From Mytilus californianus (Eukaryota), in NCBI RefSeq assembly GCF_021869535.1, contig NW_026262712.1, positions 89,466,001 through 89,530,000 of the forward strand: a stretch of DNA of 64,000 nt. The letters are read 5' to 3'. This document shows, piece by piece, positions 3,063 through 62,792 of this stretch (positions are counted from its first letter, which is position 1; the number at the start of each line of letters is the position of its first letter). The notes beneath the pieces are model-generated. The model saw only the letters and a list, made by a program, of their open reading frames with translations. It was not told where the DNA came from and made no database searches. Position numbers and translations under genes: made by a program.

Positions 3063-3317
3063 GTTGGCTTAACTCAAAAAATCGGTACGAAGCACAAAAT
3101 CAACTAACATAAAGATAATAGCCACATAGCATCGATATAAGAGTAATCGCATGCAATTACTGAAAGCTAGTTCAAAGCGAATTACAACTAATAAATAGGT
3201 CATTTGTCTACCAAACTAATGCATTGTGACAAATTCTTACCTAATCTTCTCTAGTCTATAGAAATTGTGATTTATTCAACAGATGTGATAAAATGCTGAA
3301 AACCAAAATCCAATTTC

Positions 3318-30482: not shown

Positions 30483-32861
30483 ACGACTGTAAACCTATCT
30501 GCATATCAGAAAATATCCTACGTGCACCAAGGAAACGTATATATCAGAAAACTTTTCCATGATTTTTAAAATGCAGCAACTTTTTAACTGCAGTGATAAT
30601 CAGTTTTCACGATCTCACTATACATTGTCAATCTAATATTATTAAACAACAAGACACATGTTGGCTAAACGTAAATGTCAAAGAAACGTGACTAATTCGT
30701 TCAGCTGAATCCTCAATGACATTAATCCCACAAAGACGAAACAAATTGTTCGTATTGAAAGCTAAACGAAGATCAGGGCATTATTTAGATTGAAAACAAA
30801 TTACGCAACTTTCAAGGAACTAATCTATTTAGTCTAACATTTATTGAATATGCAATCAGAATATAACTAGTTCTAAAAATGAAAATAACACCTAGTCTAT
30901 AGTCTTTATAAATGTGGTGCGTCCGGAGCACATTTCTAAGTTTTCCTTTAACAGGAATGCTCAAACCCATTACAACAACAAAAAAACGAAAGCCAAAGAT
31001 ACTTGTATCCCTCTTGAGGAGCTATCTGACCAAAATATAAAAGAAGGTGTGTTCACGCATAGCCAAACCTACTCTTCACAGTTTACTAGATTTTGCAAAT
31101 AAAGTCACATTAAAATGAAATAACACATTGAAACATAGTTTGTATATAAAGACATTTGTTATTAAAACCTGCCTTCCTTAAATTGTCTTTCGATCGATCG
31201 TGAGTTTGTAAGTAACAGCTGAAGCTTCATTTTCACGACATTTATAATGAAGACCATAGTTTATTACACTATTACGCAACGCAACGCAAAAAAAAAAAAA
31301 GAAATCAAAGAAAATTAAATAAAATTTATTTACGGACCCTGTCAATTTTTGTCAATCTCCATTATCAACATAAAACAACCAGTTTTCCTATAAAAATGTC
31401 AACTGAGACATTAATTGCAAAAGAAATGCAACATAATTCAATTGAACTTCAGAAAACTGTTGTCGTGTCAAATGACGTGGACTGCCTGTCGGTTTATTTG
31501 CTCAAGTTTGACACATTATTTTATAATTTTGCAGACGTTCAATTTCTATACAACAATTTGATAGTGAAATAAAAATCGCTAATATAAATTGGAATAAGAA
31601 TTTAAAATCTTGTATATACCTTTCTGCACTGTATTAAAGTTGAAAGTTGAAGGACTTATTGAGCTTGAAAGGCAACGTGATTACGTGTGGTTTGGGTTCG
31701 TTCAATACACAACATGCATTTATATAAATCATTTGGTAAATTTTAATTAATCTACTCCGAAGTTTTATAACTACTCTGTCATGTGCGAAAACAATGTGAA
31801 AATATCTGCAGGCATGTTTGAGTTTAACCTGTTGAAGTTTGAGGATACCATAAAGAAATTAAATGCGAAAAAGGTTAGTTTGAACGTCTATTTTTTTCGC
31901 ATTTATGCTTAGTATATTTCACTTATTTTGCTTGTTGATTGTTTTATATTTTTCCGGGGGTCTAAATTGGTGAATCGAAGTGCCTCAACTTTATTAATTT
32001 TGCTTTCTCATATTGCATGAAACCAGATATATTTACCTTTGAGAGCTCAGTGCTTAGGAGTAGATTTTTCCTATCGCTATAGACAGAATTAATAAATATA
32101 CTTATTAATACGTTTACAACACAATTTTCTTGTACCTGTGCAAATCTGAAAATCAGAATATGGAGAGAAGAGTCGATTGAAATTCCGAGTAAAATAGGAC
32201 CAATATATTTTGAATCCGTGTATGATTATGTGTTTATTTGATTATTTAATTGCCTCCAATGTTGATTTTGTTATCCTTATCGTATAACGTTTACAACTGA
32301 CACCGTTGGCAGGTTGAACATTGATACAATAGATATAAATTCTTAATCAAATATTTGCTCATTTGTATCACTGTTAATTGCTTACATGTACGCAGTTTCA
32401 GGATCCAAACAAACGAACTCTCATATTAGATCATATTTAATTGAAAACTCTGGAGTAAAAATGCCCAAACTGAAGTAGTGTCTGATTTGTGTAAATCAAA
32501 AGAATACATGCAATTCGTTTAAGCGGTAAGTCGAAATTGTAGTATGGTCAATTTCCATTGTATCTATTTCTCTTTCAGGGTCAAAATCAAAATGTTGTTG
32601 AAACTTACGGAGCTCGATTATTAAAGAGACTAAATAATATTATATATGAATTTTTCAATGCTTTTACGTTTCGATCCGTAGGTAACAAGGGATAAACATT
32701 GTTGTGATACGTACGTAACAAGGGATAAACATTGATGTGGACAACTTTGATACAATATTGCAATTGTATGTTTTTGTAAAATTTTGCATCGAAAGACACT
32801 ATTTGCCAAAATAAAATGTAATTAGATATCCTGTTTATATCATGCTTTACCATACAATAGG

Positions 32862-41429: not shown

Positions 41430-43254
41430 AAGAAAATCAAACATCAGAAAACAGAAAGCAATGGAGTTGCACCACTTTGCAGTGAAGGTATAGTACACAC
41501 ACACCCTGTAGACCAAGCAACCATTCTAAACAAGCAATTCCAATCTGCCTTTTCCACCAAGGACACATATAATGAATACGAATTTAAATCCAGATGCAAT
41601 ATGCCAGGCCAATATCCCTCAGCAGAGGAACTCAACATCACAGAAAATGGTATACTCAAACTTCTGACAAAAATAAATCCAAATAAAGCAGCTGGACCAG
41701 ATAATATAAAACCTAAACTACTCAACGAACTGGCCACAGAAATAGCCCCAATCCTTACAATCATTTTCAAAACATCAATAGAAACTGGGGATGTACCACC
41801 TGACTGGAGAAATGCGAACGTAACACCAGTATACAAGAAAGGAGAAAGATATAAAGCAGAAAACTATAGACCAATCTCTCTAACTTGTATTTGCTGCAAA
41901 CTAATAGAGCATATAGTTACAAGCCATATCATGAAACATGCTGATCAACATCAAATCCTCTATCCGTTACAACATGGTTTCCGTAGTAAACGCTCGTGCG
42001 AAACCCAACTAATCGAATTCGTGGATGACATCACTAAAAATATGAGTGCAGGTAAACAGACAGATGTTCTCATAATGGATTTCTCAAAGGCATTTGACAA
42101 AGTCAGTCATAGTCTCCTGGTACACAAACTAGAACATTACGGTATCAGTGGTAAAATCAATAGATGGATTGCCAGCTTCTTATCCCATCGAACGCAAGCA
42201 GTAGTAGTGGATGGAGAGAGCTCATCACATATTGATGTAGAATCTGGAGTTCCTCAAGGCTCTGTACTTGGTCCTGCATTATTCTTGTTTTACATCAACG
42301 ACATGCCAGATGGGGTCAAATCCACTGTCCGCCTATTTGCTGATGACACAATAGCATATCTTACCATCTCATCTGACAAAGACTCAAACGACCTCCAAAA
42401 CGACCTGGACAAACTGGGAACGTGGGAAGTCAAATGGAAAATGCCCTTCCATCCGGACAAATGTAACGTTCTTACCATCAGCCGCAAAAACAACACCATT
42501 CCAACATCGTACACATTGCATGGCCACAAACTTGAACCTGTCAAAAGTGCTAAATACCTTGGTTGCACCTTCACATCTGAACTGAAGTGGAATGATCATA
42601 TCAATAACATATGTAACAAAGCCAATAGGACAATAGGCTTACTTAAGAGAAATCTAAACATAGGAGCAACTTCAGTCAAAGAAAATGCATACAAAAGCCT
42701 CGCAAGACCAGTAATAGAGTATACAAGTCCAGTATGGGACCCATACTTTAAAACCGAAATAGATCGTCTAGAAATGGTCCAGAGACGAGCAGCAAGATAT
42801 GTTTCCAACAAACACCATAACCATTCAAGTGTCAGCAAAATGATTGAGCACCTAGAATGGCCATCTCTGGAAAAAAGGCGAAAAGACGCTAGACTAACTA
42901 TGCTCTATAAAATAGAAAACAACAAAGTGGCCGTAACTAAGGAAGGTCGTCTTATGCAACCAACACGACTGTCGAGGAACATGCACTACAAAAGTTTCCA
43001 AATTCCAGCATCCAGAAGTGATTACAGGAAATACTCATTTTTCCCGAGAACGATCAGGGATTGGAACGCTCTCCCTCCTGGGGTAGCATCAGCATCGTCA
43101 GTCGAGGCCTTTAAAGCCTCTCTGACAAAGCTGAACTAAATTATCAAATTGGGGGGTGGGGGAGGGGGTCTGTATGCGCACCTAAGTCATGGCATAATAA
43201 TCGGCTCGTTGATTGTGGCCATTATCAGGCAGAAGAAGCAGAAGCAGAAGAAAA
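41430..43254 (+). mobile_element. 5'-truncated CR1-group LINE, young insertion
   Basis: Stop-free frame 41430-43139 with the RT domain, then a G-rich 3' UTR with an imperfect hairpin and a (CAGAAG/AAG)n tail to ~43254. No APE endonuclease or ORF1 is present. Possible AAGAAAA duplication at 41430-41436 and 43248-43254. Confidence 0.92.
41601..43139 (+). CDS. Non-LTR reverse transcriptase ORF2 (N-truncated; frame open from 41430, ~570 codons)
   Basis: KAAGPD, ENYRPISLT, QHGFRSKRSC, MDFSKAFDKV, SGVPQGSVLGP, LFADD, KYLG and C-terminal YSFFPRTIRDWNALP. Confidence 0.95.
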   Translation: MPGQYPSAEELNITENGILKLLTKINPNKAAGPDNIKPKLLNELATEIAPILTIIFKTSIETGDVPPDWRNANVTPVYKKGERYKAENYRPISLTCICCKLIEHIVTSHIMKHADQHQILYPLQHGFRSKRSCETQLIEFVDDITKNMSAGKQTDVLIMDFSKAFDKVSHSLLVHKLEHYGISGKINRWIASFLSHRTQAVVVDGESSSHIDVESGVPQGSVLGPALFLFYINDMPDGVKSTVRLFADDTIAYLTISSDKDSNDLQNDLDKLGTWEVKWKMPFHPDKCNVLTISRKNNTIPTSYTLHGHKLEPVKSAKYLGCTFTSELKWNDHINNICNKANRTIGLLKRNLNIGATSVKENAYKSLARPVIEYTSPVWDPYFKTEIDRLEMVQRRAARYVSNKHHNHSSVSKMIEHLEWPSLEKRRKDARLTMLYKIENNKVAVTKEGRLMQPTRLSRNMHYKSFQIPASRSDYRKYSFFPRTIRDWNALPPGVASASSVEAFKASLTKLN

Positions 43255-43625
43255 GCATGTCGGATGCAACACATTTACAAATTTTAATTCCTTTTTCAGC
43301 ACTGGGTCGATACCGCTCCTGTTGGACAGCTAGTCCTCGGGTGTATCATTAGCTCAATAGCCAGTACTGCATCTTCACTGACTTGATTCATAGCATGCTT
43401 AAATTCACAGTTGACACATTTAGAAATTATAAGAACTAAGGTTCAATCTCCCTTTGGTAAAGTTGACGTTAGGCAGAATTGTCTATTCTTTGGTCATACA
43501 GCAAGTATTATTTATAAATCATGGCTTTCAAATTTTTGGGGTTGGTCGTTCGTCGTGAAGGGAAATCCAAAAAAGCGCTTATGATGCAACACATTTTAAA
43601 TTGTTATTTTCATTTTCTGCTCTAC
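43255..43625. repeat. Older interspersed repeat with a repeated GATGCAACACATTT module, interrupted by the LINE
   Basis: AAAAGCATGTCGGATGCAACACATTT (~43251-43275) recurs as AAAAGCGCTTATGATGCAACACATTT (~43572-43597). Confidence 0.55.
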
Positions 43626-44249
43626 TGTCGGTCTTCCTTTCAGATTTTGAAGAATTTTGTGTGTATTTGTGTAATTAGTATTAATTTTGTTTAACATTCT
43701 TCTAAATATGATTATAACGGAAGACTATTAGGTTTTGAAGACTTAAATAGTTAGAATATTTTTGTGTGCATATTTGATTTTTATTTCGTGCATATCATTA
43801 GATGATTTTCAATCGTTTAGATTGACTGATTATTTAGAAAACCTTTCCGGGATTGTCAGAACTTACGTTGTTTCAATTATTGCAAAACAGTTGTTAATGT
43901 TCATTCCTGGGCACTATTATAATTGAGTTTATAGCAAAGACCATACGTGACACTTTCGAAAAAAATGATTTTCCTTTGGAATCGTTTATTTATTCAAACT
44001 AAATCTCATTAGAACAATCCTTTGATAATTCTTTGCACTGGTCTATTGCTTGATGCTGTCTTAAGATAACACAAGGATATGTACTATGATTCTCTATGAG
44101 TCAAATATGACAGTTGTTTTCCCTTCGTTTGAGTTTTTGATTTTGCTATTTGATAAGGGACTTTCCGTTTTGAATTTTCCTCGGAGTTCGGTATTTTTGT
44201 TGTTTTTCTTTTTATCCACCATAGATAAAATAACGTAGATGTTAGCAAC

Positions 44250-47334: not shown

Positions 47335-50083
47335 CCATGACTGAATTAAAGTACCTATGCCTTTTTTTTTTGCCTGGATGAAATAGTTTCGTTTATTCGA
47401 TTATGATAAAACTTCTTTTTTTTTCTGTTATATTTTAGAATACGGAGAAGTTTAAACGCAGTCTCTTCAAATCAACAACAAAGAACAGCTCTCTATACTC
47501 ATCCCAAACGTCTCCATCATTAGGGCAGAACGGTTTGGTGAGAGAAACAATGGATTCATATCCACAGACTTATATTTTGCAATTCAGTGCACAAAAATCT
47601 ATTCTTATAATACCAATGATGGAACTGCTTTGATGTCAGTAGTTGAGTTGTAAAATAACACACGATTCTCCGGTACACCGAAATGAAACCGATTGATTCG
47701 AGCCATTTGTTACTTTCACGACTTATTACTGCATTTATAGAGAGAGTCGTTGTAATTGCTACTATAATACTACTTTCAAATTCGTGCATTTTCCAGTACA
47801 TGTTCTATGTCTCAATACTTATGTTATTACGTTACAGTAAGAACCGATGGCTCAACGGCGGCATTTACACCAAATGACCTCGGGTCAACTGGTGTAACCC
47901 ATTTATAAAAAAAAAAAAAACTCGACATTGGTCTATTTTCTATGAAGATCATTAGTTTGTGTAACAATACTCCTCTAGGTGTTAAGTGATGTTAGGTTTT
48001 ATATGTGTAGTTATATTCAATGGTCATGCGCAATGACGTGCGAGAATAAAGGAACTGTCATAGGTAAACATATTCCTTTGATGCAAAAGGTCAAATGTAA
48101 AAGAGAGGCGAAAGATACCAAAGAGACATTCCAACTTATAAGTCGAAAACTAACTGATAACGCCATGACAAAAAAAAACCCAACCCGAACAACAGTATAG
48201 AAAAACACAATATAGAAATTGAAGACTGAGCAACACGACTAAAACCGAAAGCAAGAGCAACACTAACCCCTTTTAAGCAAAACTAGGGATGATTTCTGGT
48301 GCTTAAATTCTCACAAAGACACAAAGAGTTGTTGGAAAAGTTTTGATCTTCATAGAACGTGACGTTCTCCTACATTGTAGTTTTGAACATCGCGTGATAC
48401 ACCCAATTCTAGTCGCACGTGACTTCGTATTTTTCAATAACATCCACTAGGATGCCCCCTCAACTTCGGTCTTACCGTCGGACGGGAGAAGCGAGAGAAG
48501 TCTAAATGACCATCATTATTGGAGCACTCTTGTCAAAAATGGGGTTTCTAATGCAATAGGTTTTCAGTATACATATCTTATGAAAATATTTTAATAGTAG
48601 TAAAATAAATATGTATTATATATTAATTATAGTTACTTGTTTGCTTGGTATATTATAATTGTTTTAAACCGGTATCAAACATATTGTATTACTTTTCAAA
48701 TTAACAGTAATACAGTTTTCTCGAAGGCTATATTTTAAGAAAATATTGTTGCTAAGATGTTATTAAAGTTTTTGAAAATTGAACTTCTCGTTTGGTTGAT
48801 ATTCACTTGAATTGTATTTTGACGTTCTGATATAAGCTCTGCTTTGTTTTGAAAACCCATACATTAAAATTGGAAAATAATGTGGAGTTGTCAATTTTTA
48901 TATACAAATATATATCAAATAAAAGGGGTATTGTCAGCCATCGGAGTAGATAGAACCATCAGTGTCGTTATTTTGTTTTTAGACCAAAGCTTTGAATAAA
49001 AAATTTACCTTTTCTTTTACATTTAACAATCTCATCTACATAACCTTGTGTCTTTTTATGAATTTTATTCTTATGATGTTTTGTGATATTACGTAAATCC
49101 GTCAGTCGATGTTAGATGATACTATTTTTTTAGAATGGTATTATTTCAGTCATGAGATAATATCAGATGGGTAATACAATTTTTTCTGATACTGCATGGC
49201 ATCAATATTGCACTTTTAATACTGTATGTCATAGGTTACAAGCATTGGCGTCATAATTATAAGCCAACCGTCTTGACGTATTACCTAGGGTATACACCAT
49301 TCATGTGCCGTAATAAATAATGCTTTGCTAAATTCCAAATACTTGCAAAGCAAACATCACTGCAAAATTCCCATGAAATACAAAGTACGTGTTTTAAGTT
49401 TTTCAAATTATAATAGAAATTCATGGCGCTGATATAGTATGATTTTGTCCATATACATTTTTTTGTGCTGAATGTTAAGTGGCAAATTAATAACTATTTA
49501 TTGATTGAAGTATAACAAGTTAGTATTAAATGATTATTGTATAATTGATACACAACTAGGATAATATCCTCCAGGCGTGTAATTGCCATGCGAAAAATCT
49601 TGTTAAAATTCCTCACTATTTGTATTTTCACAGTCATTAGCTGAACCAATTTGTTCTCCGAACATTTTAACACGTCCATCTGACATTATTATGTATGTAG
49701 CATTTGTCAACGTGTGTTCTTTAGTGTCAGTAGCATAATTTACATCTTACAAATTGAAACAAACATTGTAAAACATGCATGATGGGAACGGACTATATAA
49801 TAAAAACATGAAAACAAACATCATTTCCGTTCTTAAATCTGTTTTGTATGGGACTCGAACACATACTTTCTATCTCGGGAAGACGGATGCAGCATATAAA
49901 AAAAGTTTTTATTGTGTTTAAAAGTTAACAATGAAGTATGCTTCGTTTATGGCCATTCCAACCAATATGGTTAAAAGACTGTTTCATACCAAAACAGTAC
50001 GTAATCTGAATATACATGCATATAAATTCACATTTTCAGATTTAAATAATTTTTTGACGATATTTACATTTTATTTTGATTAG

Positions 50084-50233
50084 GAAACGATAATGGAAAA
50101 AGAGAGTCTGTCTTCAACAACACATTACACTCGGAAGAAATCGTTCCCTTTTCAACACGAACATGGATTACATGCAGGGATGTATAGTGCTCATGGCTCT
50201 AGAAGACCATCAGTGGCTTACAGGGCCGTTAAA
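50084..50233 (+). CDS. HVCN1-like: Hv exon: N-terminus (ETI)MEKESLSSTTHYTRKKSFPFQHEHGLHAGMYSAHGSRRPSVAYRAVK
   Basis: ttttattttgattag acceptor, ATG at 50093 in strong context, AAA|GTAAGT donor, phase 0 into the next exon. No direct homology support. Confidence 0.75.
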
Positions 50234-53628: not shown

Positions 53629-53747
53629 GCTGTGGAAAATGTCGCTAGACGAATGTCCACACCTGATTTCTCAATTGAAAGAATTGAGCAAAACTTAGAG
53701 GAAGAACTTGAGAGAGAATCAAAAGAACCAGAAAAACTTGGAGACAT
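53629..53747 (+). CDS. HVCN1-like: Hv exon: AVENVARRMSTPDFSIERIEQNLEEELERESKEPEKLGD(I)
   Basis: tttacag acceptor, AT|GTAAGA donor, purine-rich coding composition. Phase 2 matches the S1 exon. Confidence 0.85.
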
Positions 53748-55418: not shown

Positions 55419-55543
55419 TTTACGAAGGTCTGGTGAGAAACTCCTACATAGTAAAAAAGTTCTGTTTTTGATCGTGCTTTTAAACATCATCGATTGTGGA
55501 TTGGTTCTTGGTGAATTAATTTTAGATATACACTTTATAAAAG
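55419..55543 (+). CDS. HVCN1-like: Hv exon, S0-S1: LRRSGEKLLHSKKVLFLIVLLNIIDCGLVLGELILDIHFIK(D)
   Basis: D112, V116, E119 and D123 equivalents are conserved. cttttcttgttacag acceptor, non-canonical AAG|GCAAGT donor. Confidence 0.92.
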
Positions 55544-57041
55544 GCAAGTATTAGATAATGTAACATCTAACATACCTTATAAATCTGAAAACTGAATAAC
55601 GTTGGATATAAAAGGATTGCCTTCAAATTTTCAAAAATAACTAGTTCAGGGTATTAATTCTTCGACACATGTCATGTATTAAACATGTATTCATTGTAAC
55701 ATATAAATATGGAGAACACCAATTCAAATGTGTTTCTTAGATATGAAACAGTTTACTGAAGGTTACGAGAATTTCGGGGTAAACATAAATCTTATTTTAT
55801 CAATAAAATGTAGTATTACTGATGTAACGTAAACCACAATTCAATTAGAAGGAAGGCCATGCATTGTCTTTAATTAAGAATTAATTCGTTTATGTTATTG
55901 ATATTGTATTGAAAGTGTCTTTAGTATCAAAGTTTAGCAATCAATCAAAAGCGTTTTGATTTTATGCATATTTGTACAATTGTTGGATATTGTTAGGAAT
56001 ATAGAATCTTCAATATCCAATTCCACCAAGTTTCGTTAACTTTTGGTTTTTAACCCCATAGTGAAACAATTTATGTGCAATTGCTCACAACTCTTTTTTG
56101 TGTGTGTATTTTTTGCATAAGGTAATGTCCAATTGAATGTACAGTTGAATTACTACTTAAAACTCATTATATACCTGCATGGAATGTATACATTCCTTGC
56201 GCCGTAGACTGATAGGTAAAACTTGTTCTGTAATAAAGTTCAAGACATTTGCAAGCAATTGTAAGCAAACTAAATATTTTCGAAAATATATTAAGGTAAA
56301 GATCAACGTTCTAAAAGTGCAGTTATTAAATATCACCAGGGGGTTAAGGAAATAATTTGAAATGTTGATAATATTTCACAGATAATTTGCAATGCAGCAA
56401 TAGAATTATAATATATCATGATTATTCGTTAGATGATTATATTCGCAGTACAGTGTCGGAATTATTAGATTAATTTGTTATATATGAAATTGTCCGACGT
56501 TTTGTATGGAGGGTATCGTGGAAGAGTGTTCTGCAGAGAAGGCATCTTTGAAAAAATATTACCAAAAATATTTTTCGTGGTATTTATGTTTAGTACCAAT
56601 TTCACGAAAGAGATAAACGATCCGTTCACAATCATTACTAAAACAATTTTTCATGGCACCTAGTATAGTGAATAGTACCATTTTCACTATGAAACCCGAT
56701 TCATTCCTTATCTATTTTGCTCTCTATGTATTTAATCAGAGAAAGGTCATTATATTTACAAGACCTTGACCACAGTAAGCACGATGTGAAGAACAAATTA
56801 TCGAACGTATCACTGAAAATTGGCTAAATTGCTTTATTAATATATATTATTGGTAAATATGGACGGATGGTTGTCTAAAGATTGATGATTATACCTTCCT
56901 TAATCAATGTGATTGATTATACCCTCTTTAGGAAGATTATCTTTCATTGACGTTTCTAAGTCTAATCATCATCTTCTTTATTTTACGACTAAGTATGCTC
57001 AGGTGCTACAACAGTTATATGTATATTTACAAAAACATTTG

Positions 57042-58102
57042 TTTTAAGCTCACATAGTCTGAAAGGCCAGTGTGAGCTTTTGCCATCACTTGGCGTCCGT
57101 CGTCTGTGGTCAGTTAACTTTTACAAAGATCATCTCCTCTGAAACTACTAGGCTACATTTAACCTAACTTGGCCATAATCATCAATGAAGTGTCTAGTTT
57201 TAAAAATGTGTACAATGACCCTGCCTGTCGACAAACATGGTCGACATGGCTAAAAATAGAACATATGGGTAAAATGCATTTTTTTTCTATTTCCTTGAAA
57301 ACCGCTATGGATAAAGAAAATCTGACGAGGCAAAAGTGTTCAGAATGGTATGATCTACCTTCTGTATATTGACATCAAAATTGCCAGACGACTTCTATCG
57401 GAGTAATTGCCGTTAAACGACGAATTTCACCATTCATTTTTTTTTCTTGCGTATTATTTTGTAAATCTTAATAGATATACTGAAACTTTAATTAGCAAAA
57501 ATAATCAGCAAGACAAGACCTACAAATGAATCAAACGACTAAAATCGTCGGTCAACACCTTGTCGAAGTTATAATTGCCCTTTAAAGACGATGTTCCCCA
57601 ATGTTTTACATTTTAGCTTTTATCTTGAAAACTATAATAGACATGCAGAAACTTTGAAAAGCAAAAATGATCTACAAGTAAGTTAAACAACCGAAATGTT
57701 TAGTTGACTTCTCATTGAAGTTATTGCCCTTTAATGACATTTTTTTTGCATTTTTGACTATAGATAGATAGAAACTTTAAAAAGGAAAATATTCAGCTTG
57801 ACAAGATCTAAATAATAAGTCAACATGACGAAATCGTTAGTTGTCTCCTTATTAGAGTTGTTACCCTTTCATAATAATGTTTATCATTTTTTTGCCTTTA
57901 ATCTTGAAAACTATAATAGATAAATAGAAACTTTAAAAGGAAAAATGATCAGTCAGGATAAGATCTACAAAAATGTCAAAATTACTGAAATAGTCAGTTT
58001 ACTCTTAATATAGTTATTCCCCTTTAATGATGATTTTCATTAAAAAGTGGCCATTGTTGAAGATGTAGGTGAGCGTAATATGCTCTTTAGAGCCTCTAGT
58101 TT
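57042..58102 (+). mobile_element. Complete HINE-like Helentron derivative with ~4.5 internal ~140-165-bp repeats
   Basis: 5' TTTT-AGCTCAC...GTGAGCT hairpin and CGTC microsatellite. Units start G(A)GT(T/A)ATTGCCC at ~57401, 57570, 57719, 57856 and 58012. 3' GGTGAGCG, then hairpin GCTCT-TT-AGAGC and CTAG-TTT. Confidence 0.85.
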
Positions 58103-59125
58103 GCAAATGTAATACACGCAAATTTGCCAGAAAATTGCCTTAGTCATATATCTGCTCGGAAAAAATGGCCGGCTATTTCTGTCCTTGGTATAGGCCCTGG
58201 TATCATCCCTCGAACGTATGAACCCTAGGCTTGCTTCTTGTGCTGATATGGGAATCTTGGGATGGCAGCAGGGCCGACATGGAAAAGGACATGTTACGAT
58301 CTATTTATCATGTATAAAGCTAATGCTTTAAAAAGTTATCCATATATTCGAAAATATAGGAAGGAAGGTGGATGATGCAGGTTTCCTTTGACCCCTCAGA
58401 AGTGCGGAAAAATATTTCAGACTTTGAAATAATGAAATAATGATGAATAGAATGAAACAGATACGAGTAGCAATTTTGGTGCATACGTGCCTTATTTTGT
58501 TGAATGAAAAAAGCCCAAAGTGGATTAAGTTTTAATAAGTGTGAACAGGGGTAATTGTTTGGGTTTACTTTCTCTGAGCAGATTTCATAGCATGAACAAG
58601 GCATAGTGTAATTCTGTGATTAATACATATGCTAAACCCAATGTTTACACTACAAATATTTGATAAAAGTTGTTCATTTCCATACAAATATAAGTTGTCT
58701 GTGAAAAGTAAGCGAAAACAATTCAGACAGTGTATCTTTATTTATCTTCTAGGAAGTTTATTAGAAAAGCCATCTAAAGCTTAACTAGTGTTCAAAAGCA
58801 TTATAACAATTGCCAATGCAAGTAAATAATAAGATGTAACGACCTATTCATATACAACTCTTCTTCCATTGGGACGTCAAATAAGACGGTAAAGGACATT
58901 ATTTAGAACTAATATATTTTCTTTTGTTCCTATAATTAAATGTACCCATTATGATTTTGTTATTAAAGAGTTTCTGATTAAAAGCATTTCACGTCATTTT
59001 TACTATTTTATTTTTCTGACAGGTTTAAATAGAATAGTGTTTCATATATAAGAATGTATGCATTTCGGATATCACATAATTTAATTAACTTCTTGAAATA
59101 TAAACTTCCTGTTTTACAATTTCAG

Positions 59126-59433
59126 ATATGGTAAACGACTCAAAAGTTTTAATCAAAAAGTTCATGGTTATCTTACGGACCGAGTTTGCTGCAATATTTG
59201 GATTAATAGACACATTAGATGTACCTGCATATTTCAACACAGTCATAAATACAATTTCACATCCTTCAAAATATAATCGGACGTTATCAAACAAATCTAG
59301 TGATCATTTTCAACAATTTACACATCAAGATATGCCAACTTTTTTGGATACAACAGTTACAACAATAGAAGAAGATATAGCTCATGCATTTCATAAAGCT
59401 AGTATAGCAATATTAGGTTTCCTTGTTTTAATG
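59126..59433 (+). CDS. HVCN1-like: Hv exon: long S1-S2 loop and S2 (...EEDIAHAFHKASIAILGFLVLM)
   Basis: tttcag acceptor in phase 1, ATG|GTAAGC donor. FHxxSIxIL matches Hv1 FHYMSITIL. Confidence 0.92.
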
Positions 59434-61510: not shown

Positions 61511-61564
61511 ACTATTTTAAAAGTATTTTGTTACGGAAAAGAAATATTCAAGAAAAAACTTCAG
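61511..61564 (+). CDS. HVCN1-like: Hv exon, S2 end and S2-S3 linker: TILKVFCYGKEIFKKKLQ
   Basis: Long polypyrimidine tract ending tttttacag, CAG|GTAAAC donor. K157, E164 and K169 equivalents are in register. Confidence 0.92.
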
Positions 61565-62653: not shown

Positions 62654-62792
62654 CTATTTGATGGTGTAATTGTGATTATATCCTTCGTCCTAGATCTTGC
62701 CTTTATAAAAGGTATGATGGAATATCCACTAGAAGATGCAGTTGAAATCCTAGCATTCCTTATACCATGGAGAGTAATAAGAGTTGCCAACA
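62654..62792 (+). CDS. HVCN1-like: Hv exon, S3-S4: LFDGVIVIISFVLDLAFIKGMMEYPLEDAVEILAFLIPWRVIRVAN(S)
   Basis: D174, S181, F182, D185, W207, R208, R211 and N214 equivalents. tcatttcag acceptor, A|GTAAGT donor. Confidence 0.95.

Follow-up and report, generated by a model that had tools for sequence, protein, structure and literature searches.

Hv1, a proton channel gated by voltage, serves as a model of the way in which a voltage sensor holds its own pore closed, and the hydrophobic gasket, together with the phenylalanine of the second transmembrane helix (S2), is regarded as conserved across voltage-gated channels. Here we describe LOC127704771, a gene on the + strand of a 64,000-nucleotide stretch of the genome of the mussel Mytilus californianus (contig NW_026262712.1, positions 89,466,001 to 89,530,000; hereafter the window, from whose first letter all positions below are counted). 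RefSeq assigns to the gene a protein of 498 residues (P0147 in our sequence set) annotated as uncharacterised; its C-terminal exons lie beyond the end of the window. Two positions that form the gasket in human Hv1 are occupied in this protein by asparagine and leucine.

The gasket of human Hv1 consists of V109, F150, V177 and V178 (Banh et al. 2019, PMC6754559), as the preliminary description of this locus had also held. Leak was found with V109D, F150D, V177D, V178A and V178D and with double or triple alanine mutants, V109A/F150A included, whereas V109T, V109A, F150A, V177T and V178T stayed tight (Table 1 of PMC6754559, in which V109N does not appear). For F150 all 19 substitutions have been made, F150L included, and every one of them moves activation to more negative voltages, the size of the shift in the half-activation voltage (V1/2) following the loss of hydrophobicity (Wu et al. 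2022, PMC9646954). A change of the first S4 arginine (R1) acts by itself as well: with R205W as its sole change, human Hv1 has a leak when deactivated, called comparable to that of AcHV3, and a reduced voltage dependence (2025 study, PMC11853527).

AcHV3 belongs to the unconventional HV3 channels of molluscs, which have been described as having an S4 of the form xPWRxxR, a very large S1–S2 loop and large intracellular domains, with a coiled coil following S4 (PMC10911540, PMC10377628), and as numbering up to eight in bivalves (PMC10377628). It is the only HV3 for which we found recordings in the searchable literature. The channel is proton-selective, with an e-fold change per about 60 mV, a standing proton leak and a sustained inward current (Chaves et al. 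2022, PMC10911540). Its authors held a gasket breach to be "potentially" the cause, naming no gasket residues and reporting no revertants, and rated weak voltage dependence as a simpler account than closed-state leak.

The mussel protein departs from human Hv1 at two of the four ring positions. An asparagine three residues before the selectivity aspartate and a leucine at the F150 position had been proposed in the preliminary description from a gap-free alignment, and both assignments, as well as the absence of gaps, were borne out. The S1 exon (55419–55543, + strand) carries the Asn codon AAC at 55483–55485, followed by ATC ATC and by the Asp codon GAT at 55492–55494; the equivalents of E119 and D123 lie in the same exon, as judged from the sequence and a profile alignment to S1 of human Hv1. 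The following exon (59126–59433, +; located by tblastn and the profile alignment) encodes a loop of about 94 residues between S1 and S2 and most of S2, with the equivalents of H140 and S143. Here the Phe codon TTC (59419–59421, column 149 in human numbering) is directly followed by CTT (59422–59424), the Leu at the F150 position, and Met stands at the position of E153. An exon of 18 codons (61511–61564, +; found by tblastn, its first 30 bases matched by the end of a spliced contig described below) supplies the inner end of S2 and the S2–S3 linker, including the K157 equivalent and a Gln at E171. The S3–S4 exon (62654–62792, +; sequence and profile alignment) encodes the equivalents of D174, V177 (here Ile, I177), V178 and D185 and the S4 segment IPWRVIRVAN, from which the first Arg is absent. 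The ring thus reads Asn/Leu/Ile/Val against Val109/Phe150/Val177/Val178 in human Hv1, and the fully hydrophobic gasket with an S2 Phe that characterises canonical Hv1 is absent. In the numbering of P0147, the relevant residues of S1 to S3 are N143, D146, D157 (D123), H252 (H140), F261, L262, M265, K269, Q283, D286, I289 and V290, and those of S4 are I320, P321, W322, R323, R326 and N329.

The register of both substitutions was examined with a profile built from the aligned sensor domains of 41 family representatives and searched against all PDB sequences. The profile matched human Hv1 (5OQK, expect value (E) 1.1e-21; chain index + 79 gives human Hv1 numbering), the mouse chimera (3WKV, 9.9e-19) and T-type CaV3 sensors (about 1e-4). 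In both Hv1 alignments S1 is free of gaps, as is the stretch that starts ahead of H140 and extends through S2 and S3 to past D185; they pair Asn with V109, Asp with D112, Glu with E119, Asp with D123, His with H140, Ser with S143, Leu with F150, Lys with K157 and Asp with D174. Two CaV3.3 sensors, when aligned, likewise have their charge-transfer Phe opposite the Leu, with a Glu three residues further on. Along S2, the invariant or near-invariant positions H137, H140, S143, L147, L150 and K157 form a helical stripe on which the Leu lies. In 57 aligned sequences, many of them less than 50% identical, the entropy of the Leu column is zero, and this together with its position on the stripe makes its placement more than chance. 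The Phe of the window at column 149 lies off the stripe, in a column that holds Ile in 29 members, Val in 17, Phe in 7, Leu in 3 and Thr in 1.

The exon joins on which this register depends are supported by RNA-derived data. The exons of the window form an open frame when spliced, and their translation is identical to P0147 throughout (298/298 residues); the window is free of N runs, and the RefSeq model of LOC127704771 agrees with the joins read here. This agreement includes the GC donor of the S1–S2 intron, a GC–AG intron whose donor gcaagt (55544–55549, +; preceded by AAAG) was identified from the sequence, a spliced contig, one RNA read and the P0147 model. In the contig, which has 1042 nucleotides and comes from one public run of a sister species, 55543 is followed by 59126; one of its loose ends matches the end of the exon at 53747, the other the opening 30 bases of the exon that starts at 61511. 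The identical joint occurs in one raw RNA read of that species. Contig and read support the exon pattern that sets the spacing from the Leu to the K157 equivalent. Between 53714 and 53743, the 30-letter loose end of the contig has one A fewer than the window, at an A-run near 53722, which may be an assembly slip or an indel of the sister species.

Both key codons, AAC and CTT, are unchanged in the sister-species contig. The two differences listed for the S1 exon are synonymous; the S1–S2 loop has one synonymous and three non-synonymous differences, the latter being the states found in the protein of M. coruscus. The model of this M. coruscus orthologue (P0001, CAC5376356.1, named HVCN1) splices at a GT at 55511, eleven codons upstream of the GC donor, and thereby loses 11 residues of S1, including the equivalents of E119 and D123. 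The GC donor is favoured over this GT by the spliced RNA-derived data and by the M. californianus RefSeq model. A pseudogene was also considered and is rejected in view of the open frame, the spliced transcript and the exclusively synonymous sister-species differences in the transmembrane exons.

By its sequence features, the product of LOC127704771 is a member of the HV3 family. The profile alignment and an AlphaFold2 model identify a four-helix voltage-sensor domain homologous to Hv1, in which the selectivity residue halfway along S1 is acidic (D146 on D112). S4 follows the xPWRxxR pattern, the first Arg being replaced by Ile and followed by Pro, with two Arg kept, and does not have the RxWRxxR arrangement of three Arg found in canonical Hv1, as Ile stands at R205 and Pro at L206. 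The S1 Asp and, in S4, R2, R3, Trp and Asn are retained. The S1–S2 loop comprises 94 residues between D157 and H252, compared with 16 in human Hv1, and contains N-x-S/T sequons. A search with the 46-residue S3–S4 exon returned 114 proteins, nearly all with an xPWRxxR S4; this was a word search, and so short a query cannot bring back full-length kin. P0147 itself came up in a subsequent word search.

Structure prediction is in agreement with this assignment. AlphaFold2 modelled the sensor domain of P0147 as four long helices (mean predicted local distance difference test score (pLDDT) 84.2, predicted template-modelling score (pTM) 0.71), and the scallop orthologue likewise (pLDDT 82.6), and placed N143, L262, I289/V290 and R323 each near the middle of its own helix. 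In an unbiased search, the best fold match of the model was the Ci-VSP sensor (Z 13.6, root-mean-square deviation 3.9 over 130 residues), with designed helical bundles scoring nearly as high; in VIA-align, voltage sensors were among the top matches (Z 12–14), no better than designed helical bundles. The fold search thus supports a sensor fold while falling short of proof. Foldseek returned nothing below E 0.1 from the PDB because of the inserted loop, and in Pfam, for which the family is too diverged, P0001, P0002 and P0007 had no match and P0014 had nothing but an Ion_trans hit that stayed below threshold. The models also show the S1 helix running about 25 residues past its membrane part and a second helix inside the S1–S2 loop (residues 36–94 of the modelled segment 123–341 of P0147; 59126 to about 59300), with confidence values of 81–89 over most residues and about 62 at the far end of the loop; the scallop orthologue is alike, and two N-x-S/T sequons follow the predicted loop helices. 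The S1–S2 "loop" may accordingly be a structured extracellular helical hairpin in these models.

We then compared the mussel channel with its nearest described counterparts. AcHV3 (P0029 in our set; XP_005094274/5) was recognised by its length of 980 residues and by L429/P430 as given in PMC10911540, and its ring is T44/L371/I398/V399. Both channels have an xPWRxxR S4 without R1, the selectivity Asp, Leu at the F150 column, Ile/Val at columns 177/178, a large S1–S2 loop and a long C-terminus. AcHV3 differs in having Thr at the V109 column and in keeping E153 and E171; it is also larger (980 residues with a 299-residue loop, against 498 residues and about 94 in the mussel) and belongs to a separate gastropod clade. 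With canonical Hv1 (5OQK, 3WKV), the mussel channel shares a four-helix sensor that is also the pore, and D112, E119, D123, H140, K157, D174, D185, W207, R208, R211 and N214 are conserved in register. Canonical Hv1, unlike the mussel channel, has RxWRxxR with R1, Phe150, Val109, E153, E171 and a loop of 16 residues and is an outward acid extruder.

The mutants of human Hv1 offer a second comparison. Gasket mutants alter the same four ring positions, and lower hydrophobicity there gives a proton-selective current through the closed channel and faster opening (PMC6754559). These mutants keep R1, which the mussel channel does not have, and the leaky ones carry Asp, V178A or two or three Ala, whereas the mussel ring combines one polar residue (Asn) with Leu, Ile and Val. 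The R205W mutant resembles the mussel channel in that a hydrophobic residue replaces R1; it is, however, a somatic cancer mutation, and the channel that carries it has the V/F/V/V gasket of canonical Hv1 and an S4 free of Pro.

To see how far the two substitutions extend, we counted states in the 57 aligned family members, using human Hv1 numbering. The F150 column is Leu in 57/57. The V109 column holds Asn in 47, Thr, Cys and Ser in three each and Val in one. Column 177 is Val in 29 and Ile in 28, and column 178 is Val in 38, Ile in 16 and Leu in 3. R205 is never Arg and L206 always Pro, and the P, W, R, R and N of S4 are invariant. Glu is retained at E153 in 34 members and at E171 in 50. Column 173 is Phe before the D174 equivalent in every HV3 member, an FD motif as in S3 of sodium and calcium channels, where human Hv1 has Leu. 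The invariant Leu and the majority Asn are therefore, on these counts, family signatures of an evolved alternative constriction and not a private defect of the mussel gene.

A quick tree explains the V109 column by four changes. Thr characterises a clade of gastropods (Aplysia, Haliotis, Patella), and Ser or Val a divergent clade; a chiton, an octopus and Littorina have Cys; and Asn is found in most bivalves as well as in Lymnaea and Solemya. The mussel protein groups with scallop and oyster orthologues (support 95), which likewise lack E153, and in the mussel clade the inner counter-charges have changed from E153 to Met and from E171 to Gln. One relative, encoded on a metagenomic contig (L001), lacks both R1 and the Pro, with an S4 of the form LLWRxxR, and has kept Phe at column 150, with Gln at E153. 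This single sequence hints that the change from Phe to Leu arose together with the Pro, after the loss of R1. The L001 gene occupies 1043–1100, 1573–1647, 2190–2375 and 3176–3316 of that contig, and two tandem S3–S4 exons are present, possibly mutually exclusive. Two more relatives without the Pro lie on contigs that do not reach S1 or S2.

What these residues imply for conduction was weighed next. On balance, and by analogy with the channels described above, we favour the reading that mussel HV3 is proton-selective and weakly voltage dependent and conducts at rest and inwardly, as a joint result of an S4 without R1, the gasket changes and the loss of E153 and E171. Proton selectivity is expected because the Asp and R2 are kept. 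The S4 without R1 would probably be the main cause and would account for voltage dependence being weak. Lying a helical turn below the Asp, the polar Asn would lower the barrier for a water wire; the absence of the aromatic Phe would leave the resting arginines less stabilised, and that of E153 and E171 would destabilise the down state further. Current at resting and negative potentials would make an inward proton flux possible. The gasket changes are probably contributors to the leak and not its sole cause. The invariant Leu at F150 is a conservative and presumably selected replacement, which takes away the aromatic ring and not the hydrophobic seal.

This is a narrower proposal than that of the preliminary description, which had spoken of a naturally broken gasket. 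The substitutions themselves stand, but "broken" proved too strong for residues that are signatures of the family and leave only one of four ring positions polar. Likewise, its premise that polar substitutions give leak applies to V109D and F150D and fails for V109T, V177T and V178T, and F150L is not a polar change at all because Leu is hydrophobic. Its suggestion of proton flux at rest or inwards has a precedent in AcHV3, which does so (PMC10911540), but R205W alone leaks, so the gasket is not needed to explain a leak.

Several points weigh against a contribution of the gasket to resting conduction, or against such conduction altogether. The three remaining ring residues, Leu, Ile and Val, are hydrophobic, and the invariance of the Leu suggests selection for a seal. 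Single V109T, V109A and F150A mutants of human Hv1 are tight (PMC6754559), loss of R1 alone may account for everything (PMC11853527), and the authors of AcHV3 prefer weak voltage dependence to closed-state leak (PMC10911540). No recorded current from the mussel protein or from any HV3 with Asn at this position (Asn-type HV3) was found in the searchable literature, and an RNA run of M. californianus itself, sampled to 6%, gave zero reads on the exons.

Some of these points lead to an alternative that we consider possible, though rather unlikely, in which the gasket is functionally intact and S4 is the whole source of the odd gating. Without R1, and with the Pro that follows, voltage sensing would be weakened and R2 could come up to the Asp in the resting state, with Leu, Ile and Val forming the seal; Asn would then serve otherwise, for example through a hydrogen bond to the Asp or R2 for selectivity or stability. 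The leak and the reduced voltage dependence of R205W fit this account, as do the tight single mutants, the preference of the AcHV3 authors and the invariant Leu, which is what a conserved seal would be expected to show; moreover, AcHV3 leaks with merely Thr and Leu at the two positions. Yet the V109 column is non-aliphatic (N, T, C or S) in 56/57 members, as if a polar or small side chain had been selected there, and every F150 substitution shifts activation towards opening (PMC9646954). The double mutant V109A/F150A leaks while the singles do not (PMC6754559), and the relative without R1 and Pro still has Phe, so that the replacement of Phe by Leu would be a separate, later event needing its own explanation.

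It is improbable that the mussel protein is not a leak channel at all, being either tightly gated with a shifted voltage dependence or, after the loss of E153 and E171, a non-conducting voltage or pH sensor or regulatory subunit. Asn-type HV3 is the subfamily without recordings, a review notes that certain Hv-like sequences of molluscs may have ceased to be proton channels (PMC10377628), and expression looks low, with few reads in one sister-species RNA run besides the empty same-species sample; on the other side, all Hv-defining residues (the S1 Asp, Trp, two Arg and Asn) are kept, the transmembrane exons differ only synonymously between sister species, and proton-selective conduction is known from AcHV3, whose S4 motif is the same (PMC10911540). 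Finally, a register shift in S2, by which the Phe that the window does have beside the Leu would take the charge-transfer role and the gasket would keep an aromatic, can be dismissed as very improbable: column 149 is variable and column 150 invariant, the spacing from H140 and S143 to K157, E171 and D174 is identical to that of human Hv1 without a gap, and the intron after column 153 lies at the same place in the distant relative L001, which has Phe at column 150 itself.

The remaining exons of the gene in the window encode its N-terminal part. The first coding exon of the RefSeq model, of 31 residues, lies at 31781–31873 (+; tblastn of residues 1–31 of P0147, 100% identity). It is followed by a cytoplasmic N-terminal coding exon at 50084–50233 (+; tblastn, splice sites and the match to P0147) and by another at 53629–53747 (+; tblastn and splice sites), which ends two bases into a codon. 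A second, alternative 5′ coding exon of the M. coruscus type lies at 47442–47537 (+; tblastn of residues 2–32 of P0001 and reading of the sequence); it is the start exon of the P0001 model, and its start codon is ACG here. The RefSeq start exon is 18 kb further upstream, and an in-frame ATG at 50093 is a possible further start codon. At the other end of the protein, 169 residues follow N329, and the C-terminus is an acidic tail rich in Ser, Asp and Glu. The composition of this tail is compatible with an intracellular location, which the authors of AcHV3 suspected for their channel (PMC10911540).

Two further features were noted in the introns. Within the S1–S2 intron, the short pieces 57071–57104, 57237–57278 and 57445–57945 are covered very deeply by RNA runs and contigs whose flanks are unrelated, and 56-nucleotide direct repeats are present; the pieces look like dispersed repeats expressed from elsewhere. 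Rfam returned nothing in this repeat-rich part of the intron. G+C is raised in a single 2-kb bin, 42000–44000 (0.39, compared with about 0.31), which falls within intron 1 of the RefSeq model and contains an open frame of about 100 codons on the minus strand (42904–42599).

The HV3 family, the leak of AcHV3 and the general idea of a gasket breach are already in print (PMC10911540, PMC10377628). New, as far as the searchable literature shows, are the replacement of the S2 Phe by Leu in all 57 members and a polar S1 ring position in nearly all of them (Asn, Thr, Cys or Ser in 56/57), together with the recognition of the Asn-type as a subfamily that has never been recorded. These columns provide residue-level candidates for the unexplained leak of AcHV3, and reciprocal mutants could show how much is due to the gasket and how much to the missing Arg. 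More broadly, and as a doubtful proposal when taken as a whole, PWR-type HV3 channels might constitute a natural class of voltage sensors in which the outermost gating Arg has been lost, the charge-transfer Phe likewise, and a polar ring residue gained, changes that would have come stepwise because the relative without Pro and R1 (L001) still carries Phe at column 150. Such channels would be standing proton shunts and not voltage-gated acid extruders; the bivalve Asn-type, which in the mussel also lacks E153 and E171, would conduct protons at rest or inwards more strongly than AcHV3 with its Thr, and reversion of Asn to Val and Leu to Phe would restore a tight closed state. For the mussel itself, a proton conductance of this standing kind might affect the acidification of organelles or the calcification of the shell.

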